A DNA stretch of 64,000 bases from assembly GCA_037447605.1 (NCBI GenBank), contig CM074813.1:1054001-1118000 (forward strand), in the 5' to 3' direction. Shown piece after piece: positions 15,661-26,707 of the stretch. Source of the DNA: Zygnema circumcarinatum SAG 698-1b. Its lineage: Eukaryota > Plantae > Zygnematophyceae. The translations under genes were made by a program, and so were the position numbers. The notes under the pieces are model-generated. The model saw nothing but the letters and a program-made list of their open reading frames with translations, had not been told where the DNA came from and did not search any database. The stretch's first letter is position 1. Each line of letters begins with the position of its first letter.

Positions 15661-18600
15661 GGCTCCGTCCTCTCTCTCTCTCCCTCTCCCTCCCTCTTTG
15701 GAGATATGAGAAAAAATGGGCCTTCAATGGGGAAATGATTGCCAAAAACCTAAATCCAAAAAGGAGGAAAAAAGAAAAGAAAAATGTGATTGAAAATTCC
15801 AGTGCAAATGGCCTTTATTAGAGGTAAGTCGCAGTTTCCTGGAACTAACCAGACTGTAGAAAGCTTGCGTAGAGAAAAATGTGAGACAGTGAAACGTTTT
15901 CTATTCTGTGCCGCTCTTGCCGTGCGTATAGCGATCCTTGCATTAATCGAGACTAAATCGAGATTAAATGAACACGCTTATCAAAAGTAAATTCCGGCGT
16001 CTTCAATATTTGTTCCAGAAATAGCCCATCTTTGAATGCAAGCATTCTTCCCGACAGGTAGAAACTTTCCTTCTGCTTAGTTTACGAAAAACTCGTGAAA
16101 TGTATTCTCCACTGCCAGAACGGTAAACTAGTTATAAACCAGAGTGGAAGCAAACATGCTCCTATATAATGGTTGATGGCTAATGATTAACATAATGCAC
16201 AGCCAGCTGCATTGCAGAGCCAAGCTCCAAATGCTGCAAGGAGATGCCGCATATTGAAGCAAGCCTCGACACCGCATACCACCGGTGATAATCAGAGAAC
16301 CAGACCATTAATTCCAGGAAAAGAACAGGAAACCTACCTGCAAATAACTGCAAATGGAAGACCTCCTTCTTGGATCCCTCCCTCCTGAAACCTTTCAAAT
16401 GCGTGATACCAAAGAGTGCACCGACAAGAAGCAGTTTCAGAGAGGGGCTATGGCTGCCTGAAGGGGCGCGCCATGGCGTGGGGAGCGCGGCGGGACCGCC
16501 GCCATGGCTGCTCCTTGCTGCTGCAGGGCAGGGCCAGCTGGCGACAGGGCTGGCAGAAGTGGTCGTCAAGCAGGGGCGGCGTTACAGGGAATCGGACCTC
16601 GTTCGTAAAATGATATCCAGAAAATTATTTTTCGGTTCAGGTTTGGTAAAGGTACGGTCGTCATTTTCGGGCAGAGGAAACATTTGGAATCTCTCTCCGG
16701 ATGGCGTGATTGGTGCCTGAACTTCTTTTGCTGGAAATTTCAGGTCTAGGGCAAGTCGGGCACATTTGGAAAAACTATTCTCAATTTTTTGGCACCTTCA
16801 AAAATATAGAAAAGACATGACCGACAAAATATAAGACTTCAACAGGACCTCCCAAATTTGGACCGATTCGGTCCAGGACACCTGTCGCCATCCCATTGTG
16901 TGGTTTCGCTCTGTTACGAAATTATCGAAGCCGTCGATCTCGACGATCTAACGGTCCATGTTAATAATTTGTCACGTGGCGCGTCGTGACTGGGTTACGA
17001 GTCCGGTAAGCCCTGCCCGTCGACGGGCGATCTGTCGTTTTGTCAGTCGGTCAGCGGCTCCCGCGGACAGGGAGGGAGGTTCTATGGACCGTATGATTCC
17101 AAAATCAAAAAATACGTTAATTACACTAAGGACCACTCATGACCTGCCACGTCACTCACGGAATTTACGCAACCTATCAGAAATCGTCACGCCATATACT
17201 AACACTTGTCGTTTTGTGGGAAGAAGTTAATGCCCAGATTCCCAAAATTGTCTCTTTACCGAGAACTGCCGACAATTAATTAATTCGATATTTGCCGCGG
17301 CTTAATGTACAAACGAAAACTAGTTTTCTTTCGAAAACCAAGTTTTCACATGCAATGGGTTCGACAAGTGAGTTGTCCAATAAAATAATAATCGCCACGT
17401 GGAAAACAAGTCATATGGTTCCAAATTTGGGTCCTTGAAATTAAAAAGTGTACGGACTCTCTAAACCACAACGACATTAGGGGGAGTCAGACCTTGACCA
17501 TCGCCCGCGGAATTGCAAGATTTCGACCGCGGAAAGGTATTGATTTCGATTTCCGAATTCGGATCGGAAACCACGGCTCCCCCCGAACCTGTCTGTCACG
17601 TCCGTACGGCGGAATAGGTTACAAAAATGCCCCCAAATTTCAGAATTCCGCGCTCCGAAACGGGGGGCCTCGGGAGGCCCCCCGTTTCGAAATTCCAGCT
17701 TTCCGCCGATGAGGAATCGTGCCCCGCCTTGTCGCCATGCGCGTCACGCACGTGCGAGCGTCTCTCTGCCGCCGCCCGGACGCCGCGACCCGCCGCCGCG
17801 CAGAGCAGCGTTTCAGTGCTGGCACAGGTTTAGGGTTTCGCTTCCCCCGGCACCAGCGTCCTCTTTCCGGCAACTGTGAGCACCACGGGAGAGCGGTGAG
17901 CGAAGACGCCAAGGCGACGAGGTACTCCCTCTCTATTCCCCTCTGTTGCTGTCTCCCTCGTCTCTCCCTCTCTGTTCCCCCTTTCTCTCTCTCTTGCTAT
18001 CTCCCTCTATCACTCTCGCCCTGTTATCTCTCCCACATTCTCCCCGCCTGTGCCACTCTGCCCTGCCTCCCTCGGCCTGGCCCATGCCTCCCTCGTCTCC
18101 CTTGCTGCTGCTTTTCTCGCTGCTTCGTTTTCTGCTGCTGCTGCTGCTTTTTCTGCTGCTGCCCCTGCTGCTGCACCAGCTGCTTTTAGTGCTCCTTCTT
18201 TCTCTGCTTCTGCTGCTGCTGCTGCTGTTTCTTTTTCAGCTGGTTTTGCTATTGTTGTGCTGTTGCTGCTGCTGCTGTTGTTGCTCCTGCCGTCTTTTCT
18301 GCTGCTGCTGCTGCTTTATTTGCTGCTGCTGCTGCCACTGCTGGTGCTCCTGCTTTTTTTGCTGCTTCTTCTCTGCTACTGCTGCTGCTTTTGCTTCTTT
18401 TTCTGCTACTGCTCTTTTTACTGCTTCTTTTTCTGTTGCATTTTTTGCTGTTTCTTTTCCTGTTGCTGTTGCTATTGTTGTTCTGCTGCTGCTGCTGCTG
18501 CTGATTTTTTTGCTGCTTCTTTTTCTGTTGCTTTTGTTGTTGCTTCATTCTCTGCTGCTGTTGCTATTGTTGTTCTGCTGCTGCTGCTGCTGCTGATTTT

Positions 18601-18930
18601 TTTACTGCTTCTTTTTCTGTTGCTTTTGTTGTTGCTTCATTCTCTGCTGCTGTTGCTATTGTTGTTCTGCTGTTGCTGCTGCTGCTGCTATTGCTGTGCT
18701 GCTGGTGCTGGTGCTGCTGTTGTCCTTTCTGCTGCTGCTTTTTCTGCTACTGTTGCAGCATTCATTTTCTTTTTTGCTACTGCATTCTTCTTCCGCATTC
18801 CGCATTGCCCTGTCCTTGTGCTTCCCGTTCCTTATGCTTGTGTTGTGTGTATGATTGCATATAATTCCTCCCCTTCCTTGTGCTTGTGTTGTGTGTATGA
18901 TTGCATATAATTCCTCCCCCTCCCCATTAA

Positions 18931-19001
18931 GTCGAAGTGGCGGATTGGTTACGCAACTGTTGCAAAACAGGAATAAAGGGGTTCAAATCCCCTCTTCGAC
19001 C
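18931..19001 (+). tRNA. tRNA-Cys(GCA)-like cloverleaf, copy 1; 6-nt anticodon loop, probably non-decoding
   Basis: GTCGAAG TG GCG GATTGGTTA CGC A ACTGT TGCAAA ACAGG AATAA AGGGG TTCAAAT CCCCT CTTCGAC C. Acceptor stem 7/7, T stem 5/5, D stem 3 bp, anticodon stem 4/5. A and B boxes are present. Confidence 0.75.
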
Positions 19002-20271
19002 TGCACTGTTCATTCATTCTTCCATTTGTATTCATTTATAGTTTTTGTGTTTGTGCTTCATGTCTTATATTTGTTGTTATTTTTCCTAGTTGTTTTTATT
19101 GCTTTTTGCCTTTTCCTTCAAAACTTTGAATACGTTTTACATCATATTTTCTTTTGAGCATATATAGGTAGTTTGCTAACAAAATTATGCCGGCACACTC
19201 AGGAAAAACTGTCTTCTTTGGTTTTTGGAAACCTTGGTGGTATAAGCAACCATATCAAGTGCGGCAATGGGCTGTATTTGATGCCATCAGTACAATTATA
19301 GAATCCCTTGTAACTGCGTGTGCTAAAAATCCAAAACGTCCGGACTTAGGAGAAACAAGCTGATAAAGGTGCAATTGATTCAACAACAATACAAAAAATA
19401 TCATTAGAATGATCGACGTGTGGGCAAAGGAGGGNNNNNNNNNNGGGAGAAACAAAACAAGCTGATATAGGTGCAATTGATACAACAACAATACAAAAAT
19501 ATAATTAGAAATAGAATGATGGACGTGTGGGCAAAGGAGGGACAACGTGGGTGGGGGTTGGAGGAAGAGGATCAACAAGAGAGACTGGAGAGGGTTGAGA
19601 TCCACTAAGGAGGAGAGTGAGAGTGAGTCAGGGATAAGGCATAAGAGGGAGACAACAACAAAGAAGACTGTAAGGAAGGGGCAAAGAACACTAGATGCTA
19701 AGATGTCACATACTAAGGGGGAAGGAGACACACGGGGTGGAACAAGAAGGGAAGTGACAGAAAAAAGAGAGGGCAAGACACAGCAAGGTAAGCGAAAGAG
19801 AGATAAGAAGGGAGGGGACAGGAAAGGGGGGGGGGAAGATGGAAGAACAAGGCAGGGAATAACAGAGAATGGAGCGTGAGAGGGAGAGAGAGTGGGAGGG
19901 AGGGAGCAAGTGAGCACACGGAGACAAACATGAGGAGAGATGGGCAAAAGAAAGGGTCGCAGGTGGCAAACTAGACGGACGTCTATATGAATAATCTTAA
20001 CAGACAGGAAGACAGTCTGTCAGCAGACCAGCCGTTCAAATGGAGTTTCCAAACACCAAGCTGCGAAGAGAGTGAAAAACAAAAAACAAACGCACCAAGG
20101 CCAGCATAAAGAGAGAGGAGGAAGCGGGTGAGGGATGGGGGGAATGCACAAACAACAGAAGTGAGAATGGGAGAGAGAGGGCACAAAGAGGGGGGAGGGG
20201 CAGAGAAAAAGCAAAAGAACAAACACAAAAACTATAAATGAATAAAAATAGAAGAATGAATAAATCGTACA

Positions 20272-20342
20272 AGTCGAAGAGGGGATTTGAACCCCTTTAT
20301 TACTGTTTTGCAACAGTTGCGTAACCAATCCGCCACTTCGAC
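20272..20342 (-). tRNA. tRNA-Cys(GCA)-like cloverleaf, copy 2; all stems perfect, U73, 6-nt anticodon loop
   Basis: Reverse complement reads GTCGAAGTGGCGGATTGGTTACGCAACTGTTGCAAAACAGTAATAAAGGGGTTCAAATCCCCTCTTCGACT. The anticodon stem ACTGT/ACAGT is 5/5. Confidence 0.78.
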
Positions 20343-20776
20343 ATAATGGGGAGGGGGAGGAATAACATGCAATCATACACAACACAAGCATAGGCAAAGG
20401 AACAGGCACCAGAAGAAGAAGAAGAAGAGGCAGCAGCAACAGCAGAAAAAGCAAGAGCAAAAAAAGCAGCAGCATAGAAAGCAGCAGCAACATCAACAGC
20501 TGCAGCAGGTGCTGCAACAGCAGTAGCAGCAAAAATAGCAAAAGCAGGAAAAGAAACACCACAAAAAGCTGCAGCAGCATCAACAGCAGCAGCAGCAACA
20601 GCAGCAGAAACAGCAGCACAAAACAAAATATGGTATACAAGGTATTCAAAATTTTGAAAGAAACTCAAAAAACAAAAAAAAAACAACTAAGATAAATAAC
20701 CACAAATATTTTACATCAAATGCACAAACACAAACACTATATATGAATCAAAATAAACAAATGAAAAAATAGTACG

Positions 20777-20847
20777 AGTCAAAGAGGGGATTTGAACCCC
20801 TTTATTACTGTTTTGCAACAGTTGCATAACCAATTTGCCACTTCGAC
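20777..20847 (-). tRNA. tRNA-Cys(GCA)-like cloverleaf, copy 3
   Basis: Reverse complement reads GTCGAAGTGGCAAATTGGTTATGCAACTGTTGCAAAACAGTAATAAAGGGGTTCAAATCCCCTCTTTGACT. The D stem is GCA/TGC and there is one G-U pair in the acceptor stem. Confidence 0.75.
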
Positions 20848-22135
20848 TTAATGGGGAGGGGGAGGAATAACACACAGTCATACACGCAACAAAAGCATAA
20901 GCGAAGGAACGAGAGGCACAAGCAAAGGAAGAGAAGACTGAGGCAAAGGCAACATAGCAAGGGGCAAAGGCAAAGGATGTCGGGGCAGGGGCAAGGGAGG
21001 TAAAATACGGAACGTGGAATGCGGAATGCGGAATGATGAATGAAGCAACAATACAAATAAAACAAAACCTACAGCAGCATTAGCATAAAAGCAAGAGCAA
21101 AAAAAGCAGCAGCAGCAGGAGCTGTAGCAGCAGCAGCAGGATAAGAAGCGGTTGGAGCTGCAGCAGTAGCAGCAGAAAAAGCAGCAACAGCAGTAGCAGC
21201 GGCAGCAGCACAACACAAAAACAATAGCAGAAACAGCAGATGAAGAAGAAGAAGAGGCAGCAGCAGCAGCAAAAAAACCAAAAGAAAAAAAGCGCCAGCT
21301 TAAAAAGCAGGAGCAACATCAACAACAGCAGCATAAAAAGCAGCAGCAGCAGCAGTAGCAAAAAGAGCACCAATGGAGACAAGGGGGGCATGAGCAAAGG
21401 CGAGGGAGGCAGGGGCAGGTGCAAGAGCACAGGAGGCAGGGGCAAGGGAAAGGGAGGCAGGGGGAAGGGCAGAGAAGGCAGGTGCAGAGGCAAGGGCAAG
21501 GGAGGCAGGTGCAAGGGCACGGGAGGCAGGGGCAAGGGTAAGGGAGGCAGGGGCAAGGGCAAGGACTCACCGCTGCTCAAGTCCGCCGTCGTCCCTAAAA
21601 ACCGATCGCGCTTTTGCCGTGGTCGACGGCACACCGCTCACCGTTCACCGTTCACTGGGGTGAGGCGAGAGGACGCTCTGCTCACTCCGCTGCAAGGATG
21701 GCTCGGGCGATGGCGAGGGAGGAGCCCTATACCCTAAACCCGAGGTGATCTGAGCTCGCAGCGAGCGAGCAGACGGGCAGGCGGCGGGCGCGAGGCGCCG
21801 CGGCGGGACGCCGCTCGAGCGGTGGTGACGCGCATGGCGACAAAACGGAGGGCGGCGGGCGGCGGGCAACGGAGGGAGCGCGTGGGGCCGAAAAGGGGGA
21901 GTCAGCCCTGGGCCGGAGATACGGAGGCAAAATAATTGCTCTCTGGAATTCGTGACGCCCGAGCCTGTCGAACGTCCACTTTTCGCGGAATTGGGCTGCC
22001 GTACAACGCGGAATTAGGGTCGGGGGTTTTCTGAATTGATTTGGCGCTGGTCTAAGTCTGACTCCCCCTATTGATGTCGAAAAAAACTGCATATCTGGTA
22101 CCTCATAACTGGCTAAGCATGGAACAGCGTGCATA

Positions 22136-22430
22136 CATGGAACGGCTCACTCGTGCAAGGGGCACTTAACAGAACTGCACTGATTTTAGATTCCATGCAC
22201 GGAACGGATACTGAACAATACTGAACTTTGGTCCTCATTTCATGCATGGAATAGTTCACTCGTGCAACGGATACTGACCAGAACTGAACTCGGGTTCAGA
22301 TTTCATGCATGGAACGGTCTACTCGAACAACGGATACTGAACAGGACTGAACTCTGGTCCAGATTTCATGCACAGAACGGTCCACTCGTACAACGGATAC
22401 TGAACAAAACTGGATTGAGTCCAGACTTCT
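22136..22430. repeat. 63-bp minisatellite (~4.5 degenerate copies)
   Basis: Units CAYGGAAcggtccACTCGtaCAACGGATACTGAaCAgaACTGaactcnGgtcCAGATTTCATG start at 22245, 22308 and 22371 (exact 63-bp spacing). Decayed units start at 22136 and 22198. Confidence 0.85.
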
Positions 22431-22859
22431 ACGAAGCCTTCCGAAAACTGCAAACCGCAGCATAGAGCCTGACCTTCTTTAAATTTGCCTTTCCTTTTAT
22501 CTTTTCCAGAAAGTGTTTTATTTTATTTTGTTGGGGAAGGAAAATGGGATTGAACTCACGATGGCGTTTTATTTATTTTATTGCGTGTTACTTTTGGCAT
22601 CAAATGCTGCGCGCGCAACTTGCATGAAACGCGAGCACGTGATTGGTTCACATGCAAACAAGTGCAAAAATTGAGTTGCAGAAAAGGGGACGACGGAGGG
22701 AGATGCCAGCGAAGACCAAATACTTCAAAAAACTTGGCATCTGTCGATGAAAGCATATTTTTTTTTTTTTTTGCTGTCGTCAAAAAAAAACCATTCTTTT
22801 TCCGGTTCTCCCAAAGTATTTTTTCTCCGCCGAAATTTTCACTTCCTTTTTGGTTCGAT

Positions 22860-26707
<3,848 letters not shown>

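Follow-up and report, generated by a model that had tools for sequence, protein, structure and literature searches.

A probable TA-targeting transposon family with foldback arms and tRNA-Cys-derived passengers in Zygnema circumcarinatum

What kind of DNA occupies positions 17478–22070 of a 64,000-nucleotide stretch of the Zygnema circumcarinatum SAG 698-1b genome (contig CM074813.1, 1,054,001 to 1,118,000; this whole stretch is called the window below)? A first reading, made from the letters alone and called here the sequence-only reading, saw a TA-flanked foldback-like transposon whose arms deliver tRNA-like cassettes, and proposed it as an undescribed system. Our best reading, to which we give a probability of about 0.8, is that the locus is one copy of a high-copy, non-autonomous class II transposon family of a plant-like genome, bounded by terminal inverted repeats (TIRs) and targeting TA, with foldback arms and passenger tRNA relics. 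As assembled the element measures 4.6 kb, and ~4.49 kb once an assembly-gap artefact is collapsed. It holds three tRNA-Cys-like units, M1 in the left arm and M2 and M3 in the right arm.

Ends, copy number and target site

We compared the element with Logan contigs of the same organism at 85% likeness, using two DNA runs (X1 and X2) and two RNA-type runs (X7 and X18). The features that define its ends are the following.

17478–17479, no strand: left-flank TA, the target-site dinucleotide; contigs from other loci lose likeness at 17474–17478 in X2, X7 and X18, with TA kept before the TIR in each
17480–17505, plus strand: left TIR, 23/26 positions matching the reverse complement of the right end
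21895–21907, plus strand: internal TIR-like 13-mer (1 mismatch), oriented like the left end and lying 160 bp from the right one
22043–22068, minus strand: right TIR, 23/26 match to the left TIR
22069–22070, no strand: right-flank TA; past it the depth is again that of single-copy DNA, and an X1 contig of single-copy depth begins at 22081

The sequence-only reading had described TA flanks and imperfect TIRs of ~28 bp, and we find TA on both sides and TIRs of 26 bp. Their first 13 nt, GGGGGAGTCAGAC, are exact at both ends and have no further exact occurrence in the window. The related 13-mer at 21895–21907 is possibly a subterminal repeat for transposase binding, a putative role suggested by its likeness to the TIR.

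Contig depth identifies the element as a member of a multi-copy family whose boundaries are the proposed termini, in line with the earlier view of a mobile element bounded by TIRs. Summed Logan contig depth, which tracks copy number only roughly, steps 15- to 250-fold in coincidence with the termini at 17480 and 22068. Words of the flank have a depth of 12–14 in X1 and 35 in X2, and the segment 17482–17675 reaches 3313 and 6404, respectively. Interior depths are in the hundreds, with 578 (X1) and 234 (X2) over M1 and 1112 (X1) and 1154 (X2) over M2, and the interior formed by the tRNA modules and the center lies at ~15–85 times the flank depth. Past 22137 the depth drops to 12 in X1 and 0 in X2. 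At least 99% likeness to this copy of the element is reached by 823 of the 2170 aligned X1 contigs, so many copies are near-identical, as recent amplification would leave them. BLAST of the element against the masked window gave chance matches only and no second copy, and the TIR pattern had no match in JGI metagenome contigs.

The ends are several-fold commoner than the interior because the family includes internally deleted members. One deletion joint runs from 17629 to 21956 with 14 filler letters, has a depth of 1467 in X2 and is also present in X1 and X7; further joints link 17766 to 21828 and 17791 to 21819. [quoted passage not shown] A different arrangement occurs in an X2 contig of depth 399, in which a right arm ending at 21975 is followed by 8 filler letters and by a left end from 17476; this truncated copy with its new left end itself seems to be repeated in the genome. 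The X2 flank bin 17288–17481 has a mean depth of 789, above what its two element bases explain, and in X1 the depth excess of the same bin is fully accounted for by those two bases.

The flanks share TA only. They do not repeat 3, 8 or 9 bp, which speaks against PIF/CACTA, hAT and Mutator elements, and the lack of TTAA speaks against piggyBac. Because just the 2-bp TA is repeated, mobilization of the Tc1/mariner/pogo type is favored, and a Tc1/mariner- or pogo-type enzyme is the most likely candidate for the mobilizer. None of the 10 open reading frames (ORFs) of the element matches a Pfam family, all being translations of low-complexity arrays, which bears out the earlier remark that no transposase is visible. 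A protein search with a spurious 135-amino-acid ORF across the right end also gave no match. As it encodes nothing, the element would be moved by a transposase made elsewhere, inserting at TA by cut-and-paste through its ~26-bp TIRs. The insertion site (17470–17479 plus 22069–22081) is palindromic, CGACAT-TA-TTG-ATGTCG, which could reflect a target preference of the transposase or chance; ACAT before the TA is common to one other copy. Scans for bacterial-type promoters and terminators are meaningless for this element.

Foldback interior, subterminal regions and the assembly gap

The interior appears to be a foldback in which one module occurs three times around a unique purine-rich center: the left arm has it once, and the right arm twice in inverted orientation. 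Each module would combine a tandem array rich in CT/CTG and a conserved leader of ~45 nt with a cloverleaf derived from tRNA-Cys and an AT-rich trailer. The parts of the arms, from left to right, are as follows.

17656–17689, no strand: left subterminal hairpin, GC-rich, with a perfect 16-bp stem and a 2-nt loop (sequence read directly)
17729–17747, no strand: 19-mer mirrored in the right arm, the reverse complement of 21825–21843
17829–17838, plus strand: telo-box-like TTTAGGGTTT in the CpG-rich left subterminal region (sequence read directly)
18132–18739, plus strand: CTG-rich array, including a 92-bp unit repeated 3.1 times at 18403–18687 (tandem-repeat analysis)
18823–18923, plus strand: 46-bp unit repeated 2.2 times, immediately upstream of M1 (tandem-repeat analysis)
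18931–19001, plus strand: tRNA-Cys-like unit M1, 46.4 bits with the Rfam tRNA model; also called by ARAGORN
19002–19434, plus strand: left-arm AT-rich block; a T5 run follows M1 at a distance of 41 nt (from the sequence)
19353–19541, no strand: N gap at 19435–19444 with near-duplicate flanks that are 88% identical
19542–20211, plus strand: purine-rich unique center, without a left-arm counterpart (sequence comparison)
20272–20342, minus strand: tRNA-Cys-like unit M2, 52 bits with the Rfam tRNA model; also called by ARAGORN
20400–20630, plus strand: inner CAG-rich array of the right arm (tandem-repeat analysis)
20776–20847, minus strand: tRNA-Cys-like unit M3, 49 bits with the Rfam tRNA model, 3/4 CpG sites mutated; also called by ARAGORN
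21072–21564, plus strand: outer CAG-rich array to ~21380, then GGCAGGGGCAAGGGA-type arrays with units of 21, 48 and 69 bp (tandem-repeat analysis)
21732–21741, minus strand: mirrored telo-box-like CCCTAAACCC in the CpG-rich right subterminal region (sequence read directly)
21825–21843, no strand: mirror of the left-arm 19-mer (sequence read directly)

The arms are built of tandem arrays with units of 92, 87, 69, 48, 46, 21 and 3 bp. Within the right arm a direct duplication of 176 nt (20212–20387 and 20717–20892, 505 bp apart) is 88% identical, and with M1, M2 and M3 all pointing to the center of the element, the tandem duplication and the three centre-pointing tRNA-like copies of the earlier account are both recovered. 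The M1 module forms inverted repeats of 172–191 nt with the right-arm modules at 92% and 83% identity, and BLAST identity from arm to arm is 72–92%. With the gap collapsed the element is 4482 nt long, and its minimum free energy (MFE) fold has 1500 pairs, of which 997 bridge more than 1000 nt, in collinear order inward from the TIRs. The core at 18860–20400 folds at –498 kcal/mol, compared to about –343 kcal/mol for shuffled sequences, with 187 long-range pairs. The arms are thus mutually complementary and the term foldback-like is apt.

This complementarity does not extend evenly over the arms. In a global alignment of the outer 450–500 bp, the 30–250 bp beside the TIRs are not homologous, and the likeness further in is patchy. 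The foldback character comes mainly from the interior. Of the mirrored arms claimed earlier, the interior foldback stands and the outer ~250 bp, apart from the TIRs, do not. The mirrored subterminal motifs are present as described, both as the 19-mer pair and as the telo-box-like pair. The left subterminal region (17480–17930) has a GC content of 62% and an observed-to-expected (o/e) CpG ratio of 1.26, and the right one (21560–22068) has 65% and 1.18; in the interior the CpG o/e is 0.30, versus 0.72 as the window average. Each end carries such a CpG-rich, promoter-like subterminal region. Close to the left-end hairpin, positions 17584–17701 are swapped for 106 other letters in a variant copy from X18 (joint 17583 to 17702).

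CpG-rich, telo-box-bearing regions that face inward from both sides of a strong predicted hairpin are also what one might see at a host inverted-repeat locus, either an endogenous gene for hairpin RNA and small interfering RNA or a convergent pair of promoter fragments, lying between two MITE ends. That MITE-size end relatives are far commoner than the interior would suit this alternative. We regard it as highly improbable: a single host locus would not have a multi-copy interior at ~15–85 times the flank depth, and depth shifts occur at the TIRs only.

The gap bears on whether the element exists as assembled. It is flanked by near-duplicates of 82–87 bp (19353–19434 and 19455–19541), and contigs from three independent runs, X2, X7 and X18, read through it with a single copy. 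The bridging joints are 19414 to 19522 in X2 (a 1114-bp contig) and in X7, and 19409 to 19513 in X18. Since the bridging contigs carry a single copy, the family truly has the arm–center–arm layout, and two overlapping contigs that were left unmerged are the probable source of the gap and its duplicate flanks. Contig joints that seemed to connect opposite strands are best explained as other copies aligning partly to M1 and partly to inverted M2, and were not counted.

Misjoining of the two halves had been raised as a danger by the sequence-only reading. The halves are contiguous in family contigs; as these are multi-copy, they speak for the family and not for this exact locus. It is conceivable that the scaffold joined contigs ending in different family members, so that the exact 4.6-kb sequence is absent here. 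Such a chimera would fit a 10-N gap amid a high-copy repeat, and the identity of just 88%, with indels, between the gap flanks is low for an overlap at one locus. The bridging X2 contig also matches the two sides unequally, with 2 differences in 386 nt on the left versus 13 differences and 15 gap letters in 723 nt on the right. Against a chimera, both outer junctions adjoin single-copy contigs in the correct orientation (X1 and X2), the flanks together form the one palindromic site that a single target predicts, and family contigs keep the order left arm, center, right arm. We therefore consider a chimera unlikely.

The tRNA-Cys-derived units and their possible transcription

All three units score above the gathering score of 29 for the Rfam tRNA model (RF00005). 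Infernal aligns them over the full 71-position model, with a 7-bp acceptor stem, a D arm and a T arm with a UUCAAAU loop, and their anticodon loop, UUGCAAA, is that of tRNA-Cys with GCA. M1 and M2 have perfectly paired acceptor and T arms. At the discriminator position M1 has C, and the other two units have U. However, position 31 is deleted in all three, which leaves A39 unpaired, so that the standard anticodon arm of a 5-bp stem and a 7-nt loop is replaced: folded alone, the unit RNA has either 5 bp in the stem and 6 nt in the loop, or 4 bp and 8 nt, and ARAGORN offers only a four-base anticodon for each unit. The sharing of this deletion implies that the defect is older than the multiplication of the units, and a damaged anticodon stem means that they are not ordinary decoders. 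The units would thus share one ancestor, a tRNA-Cys(GCA)-like sequence whose anticodon stem was already a base short before it multiplied, and would be passengers without normal decoding ability.

M1–M3 are separated by very few substitutions. M3 carries four changes, and three of them are CpG transitions, among them those from the G12-C23 pair to A12-U23 and from C69 to U. We rejected the apparently compensatory change of G12-C23 to A12-U23 as proof of selection, because both changes are CpG transitions; the CpG losses of M3 look like methylation-driven decay. Conserved patches reach beyond the tRNA core, 17 nt upstream and ~25 nt downstream. Exact-pattern scans, a weak test, lend no support to a prokaryotic or viral origin of the tRNA-like sequence: the 23 nt of the T arm and the 3′ half of the acceptor occur exactly in none of 185,579 prokaryotic species genomes and nowhere in IMG/VR. 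A loose pattern of the 5′ half matched one odd tRNA in a metagenome-assembled genome of Burkholderiaceae (L001, 1380–1453), which is unrelated, as its 3′ half differs; ARAGORN gives this tRNA a two-base anticodon, it overlaps the start of a tRNA-Ile, and the match to the pattern is a chance one.

An A box (TGGCGGATTGG) and a B box (GGTTCAAATCC) are present, and runs of T4–T6 follow 7–41 nt downstream. With boxes and T-run terminators kept, transcription by RNA polymerase III (Pol III) is conceivable, and the tRNA-like units may still be transcribed in this way. In the RNA-type libraries X18 and X7 the local flanks have zero depth and family sequence is present. Relative to the DNA profile, X18 also shows more of the interior than of the ends, with M3, the AT-rich block, the center and the outer CAG array all enriched. 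Zero flank depth together with the interior enrichment speaks for true transcription of long copies at some place in the genome and against carry-over of DNA. The units occur in these libraries only inside longer contigs, such as an X18 contig of depth 255 (20801–20977) whose start lies 130 nt upstream of M3; RNA of tRNA size would escape standard libraries. The claim that the arms "deliver" a tRNA-like cassette was therefore too strong, given the common anticodon-stem deletion and RNA contigs that contain the units in longer pieces only. If a long copy were read through, its RNA would fold back into a long, imperfect hairpin. Formation of such a hairpin is plausible from the predicted fold, and it is likewise plausible that the hairpin would act as a trigger of RNA silencing for the family.

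Several points weigh against our reading of the locus as a cut-and-paste transposon with inert passengers. An empty-site allele (CGACAT-TA-TTGATGTCG) was not seen in either DNA sample: the site is occupied in both X1 and X2, and in X2 the left junction is crossed by a 2846-bp contig of single-copy depth. No transposase partner was found, and the 2-bp TA is the single character behind the superfamily assignment. The summed depths are a coarse measure of copies, and the X2 contig that bridges the gap has a depth of 122 versus 35 for single-copy DNA, so that the architecture is proven for the family and not for the exact locus. Finally, M1 and M2 differ at 2/71 positions of the core versus 21/124 in the flanks of their modules (P = 0.002), and the other two pairs show the same tendency (P = 0.007 and 0.016). 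The three comparisons are not independent and the flanks are AT-rich and prone to slippage, yet the lower divergence of the core hints at constraint, which a pure dead-relic reading does not predict.

A rival idea is that the units are working parts, transcribed by Pol III or cut by RNase P/Z from a long hairpin transcript. All three have kept intact A and B boxes and, close by, T-run terminators, the acceptor and T arms of M1 and M2 are flawless, and the tRNA core is 3–6 times less diverged than the module flanks. Moreover, among the 40 best-supported family variants, none falls inside M1 or M2 and one falls inside M3. We nevertheless find this quite unlikely. The altered anticodon arm is common to all units, M3 lacks 3/4 of its CpG sites as methylated unconstrained DNA predicts, conserved patches occur outside the tRNA as well, and the RNA-library contigs cover the units only within longer pieces starting 130 nt upstream. 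Just as unlikely are roles by which the units would help the family persist, be it as promoters, chromatin boundaries, sources of small RNA or punctuation for processing. Improbable, too, is that the damaged cloverleaves are kept by selection on the family, shaping the making or processing of hairpin RNA or chromatin marks. If this were true, tRNA-like modules would serve the DNA transposon as functional components, acting as Pol III units or RNase P/Z cleavage signals within a foldback transcribed convergently. We retain the view of the units as passenger relics.

Relation to known mobile elements

Stowaway-like MITEs and non-autonomous Tc1/mariner-pogo elements resemble the element in TA flanks, short TIRs, lack of coding capacity, high copy number and short, internally deleted derivatives with a few filler bases at the joint. 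The birth of MITEs by internal deletion of a Tc1/mariner element has been described (PMC3814204). At ~4.5 kb the element is far longer than MITEs are, and with no partner transposase known, it is a candidate member of the Stowaway-like or Tc1/mariner-pogo groups. The TIR 13-mer was not found as a transposon end in the searchable literature.

The foldback families FB (of Drosophila), Galileo and Tetris produce target duplications of 7–9 bp and belong to other superfamilies. The element has only TA in place of such a duplication, the outermost 30–250 bp of its arms are not homologous, and no tRNA-like units have been described in these families; it is thus foldback-like and not a member. It shares with them long inverted arms of repetitive arrays around a short center, great structural variability and satellite-like arrays inside a TIR element. 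Galileo is a foldback-type transposon of the P superfamily (PMC3573991), and Tetris is described in PMC4079207.

Pack-type elements (Pack-MULE, Pack-CACTA and Pack-Tc1/mariner) are similarly TIR-bounded, non-autonomous and amplified with foreign or non-transposase cargo. In our element, in contrast, the cargo consists of a non-coding RNA gene relic and microsatellite arrays rather than exon fragments. Its promoter-like CpG-rich fragments and tRNA-derived sequence look like captured DNA; a donor locus for the cargo was not identified.

The closest parallel for the cargo lies in Arabidopsis thaliana, where clusters of tRNA-Cys genes are made of 0.4-kb repeat units overlapping annotated Helitron fragments (PMC10701932). 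Mobilization of these genes by a Helitron is unproven and, according to the authors, would be the first capture of a non-coding RNA by a Helitron (PMC10701932). In both cases copies derived from tRNA-Cys(GCA), pseudogenes included, have been multiplied in a transposon-associated repeat. The Arabidopsis clusters, however, are local tandem arrays of mostly intact genes, whereas the units of the element are defective throughout, occupy inverted arms and have spread together with a TIR element.

tRNA-derived short interspersed nuclear elements (SINEs) are likewise multi-copy tRNA-related sequences with A and B boxes. The units described here differ in keeping a complete 7-bp acceptor stem and a conserved ~45-nt leader upstream, the modules sharing 45–60 nt before the tRNA part, and in lacking target duplications of their own and a 3′ tail, being carried inside a DNA transposon. 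The shared upstream leader and the absence of flanking duplications led us to reject an identity as tRNA-derived SINEs.

We found no precedent in the literature searched for a TIR transposon that amplifies tRNA-derived modules. To speak of an undescribed system is nonetheless an overstatement, since a non-autonomous TIR element, foldback arms of tandem arrays and captured or passenger tRNA-derived sequence are all of known kinds; the element is a curious variant of known mobile DNA and not a new system. Its family has amplified tRNA-derived sequence to dozens of copies, which is a route to tRNA-like loci besides retroposition of SINEs, and the same DNA-transposon route inflates counts of tRNA pseudogenes. 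For annotators, the family explains recurring calls of an "odd tRNA-Cys" in this genome. It is also a natural long inverted repeat containing Pol III-type units and, if transcribed, would offer a test case for how plants and algae process a tRNA-punctuated hairpin RNA into small RNAs. Otherwise the element is an ordinary non-autonomous transposon.

The DNA to the right of the element contains further repeats. A 63-bp unit is repeated 3.3 times with 83% matches at 22203–22412, ~130 bp from the right end and at single-copy depth in X1, and a weaker fourth copy of this unit lies at 22094–22177. At 22526–22700 the depth is up again (210 in X1, 518 in X2 and 102 in X7), with a loose end at 22533, so another multi-copy repeat starts ~460 bp right of the element. 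Still further away, 23640–23792 is a (GA)n microsatellite of ~77 units.

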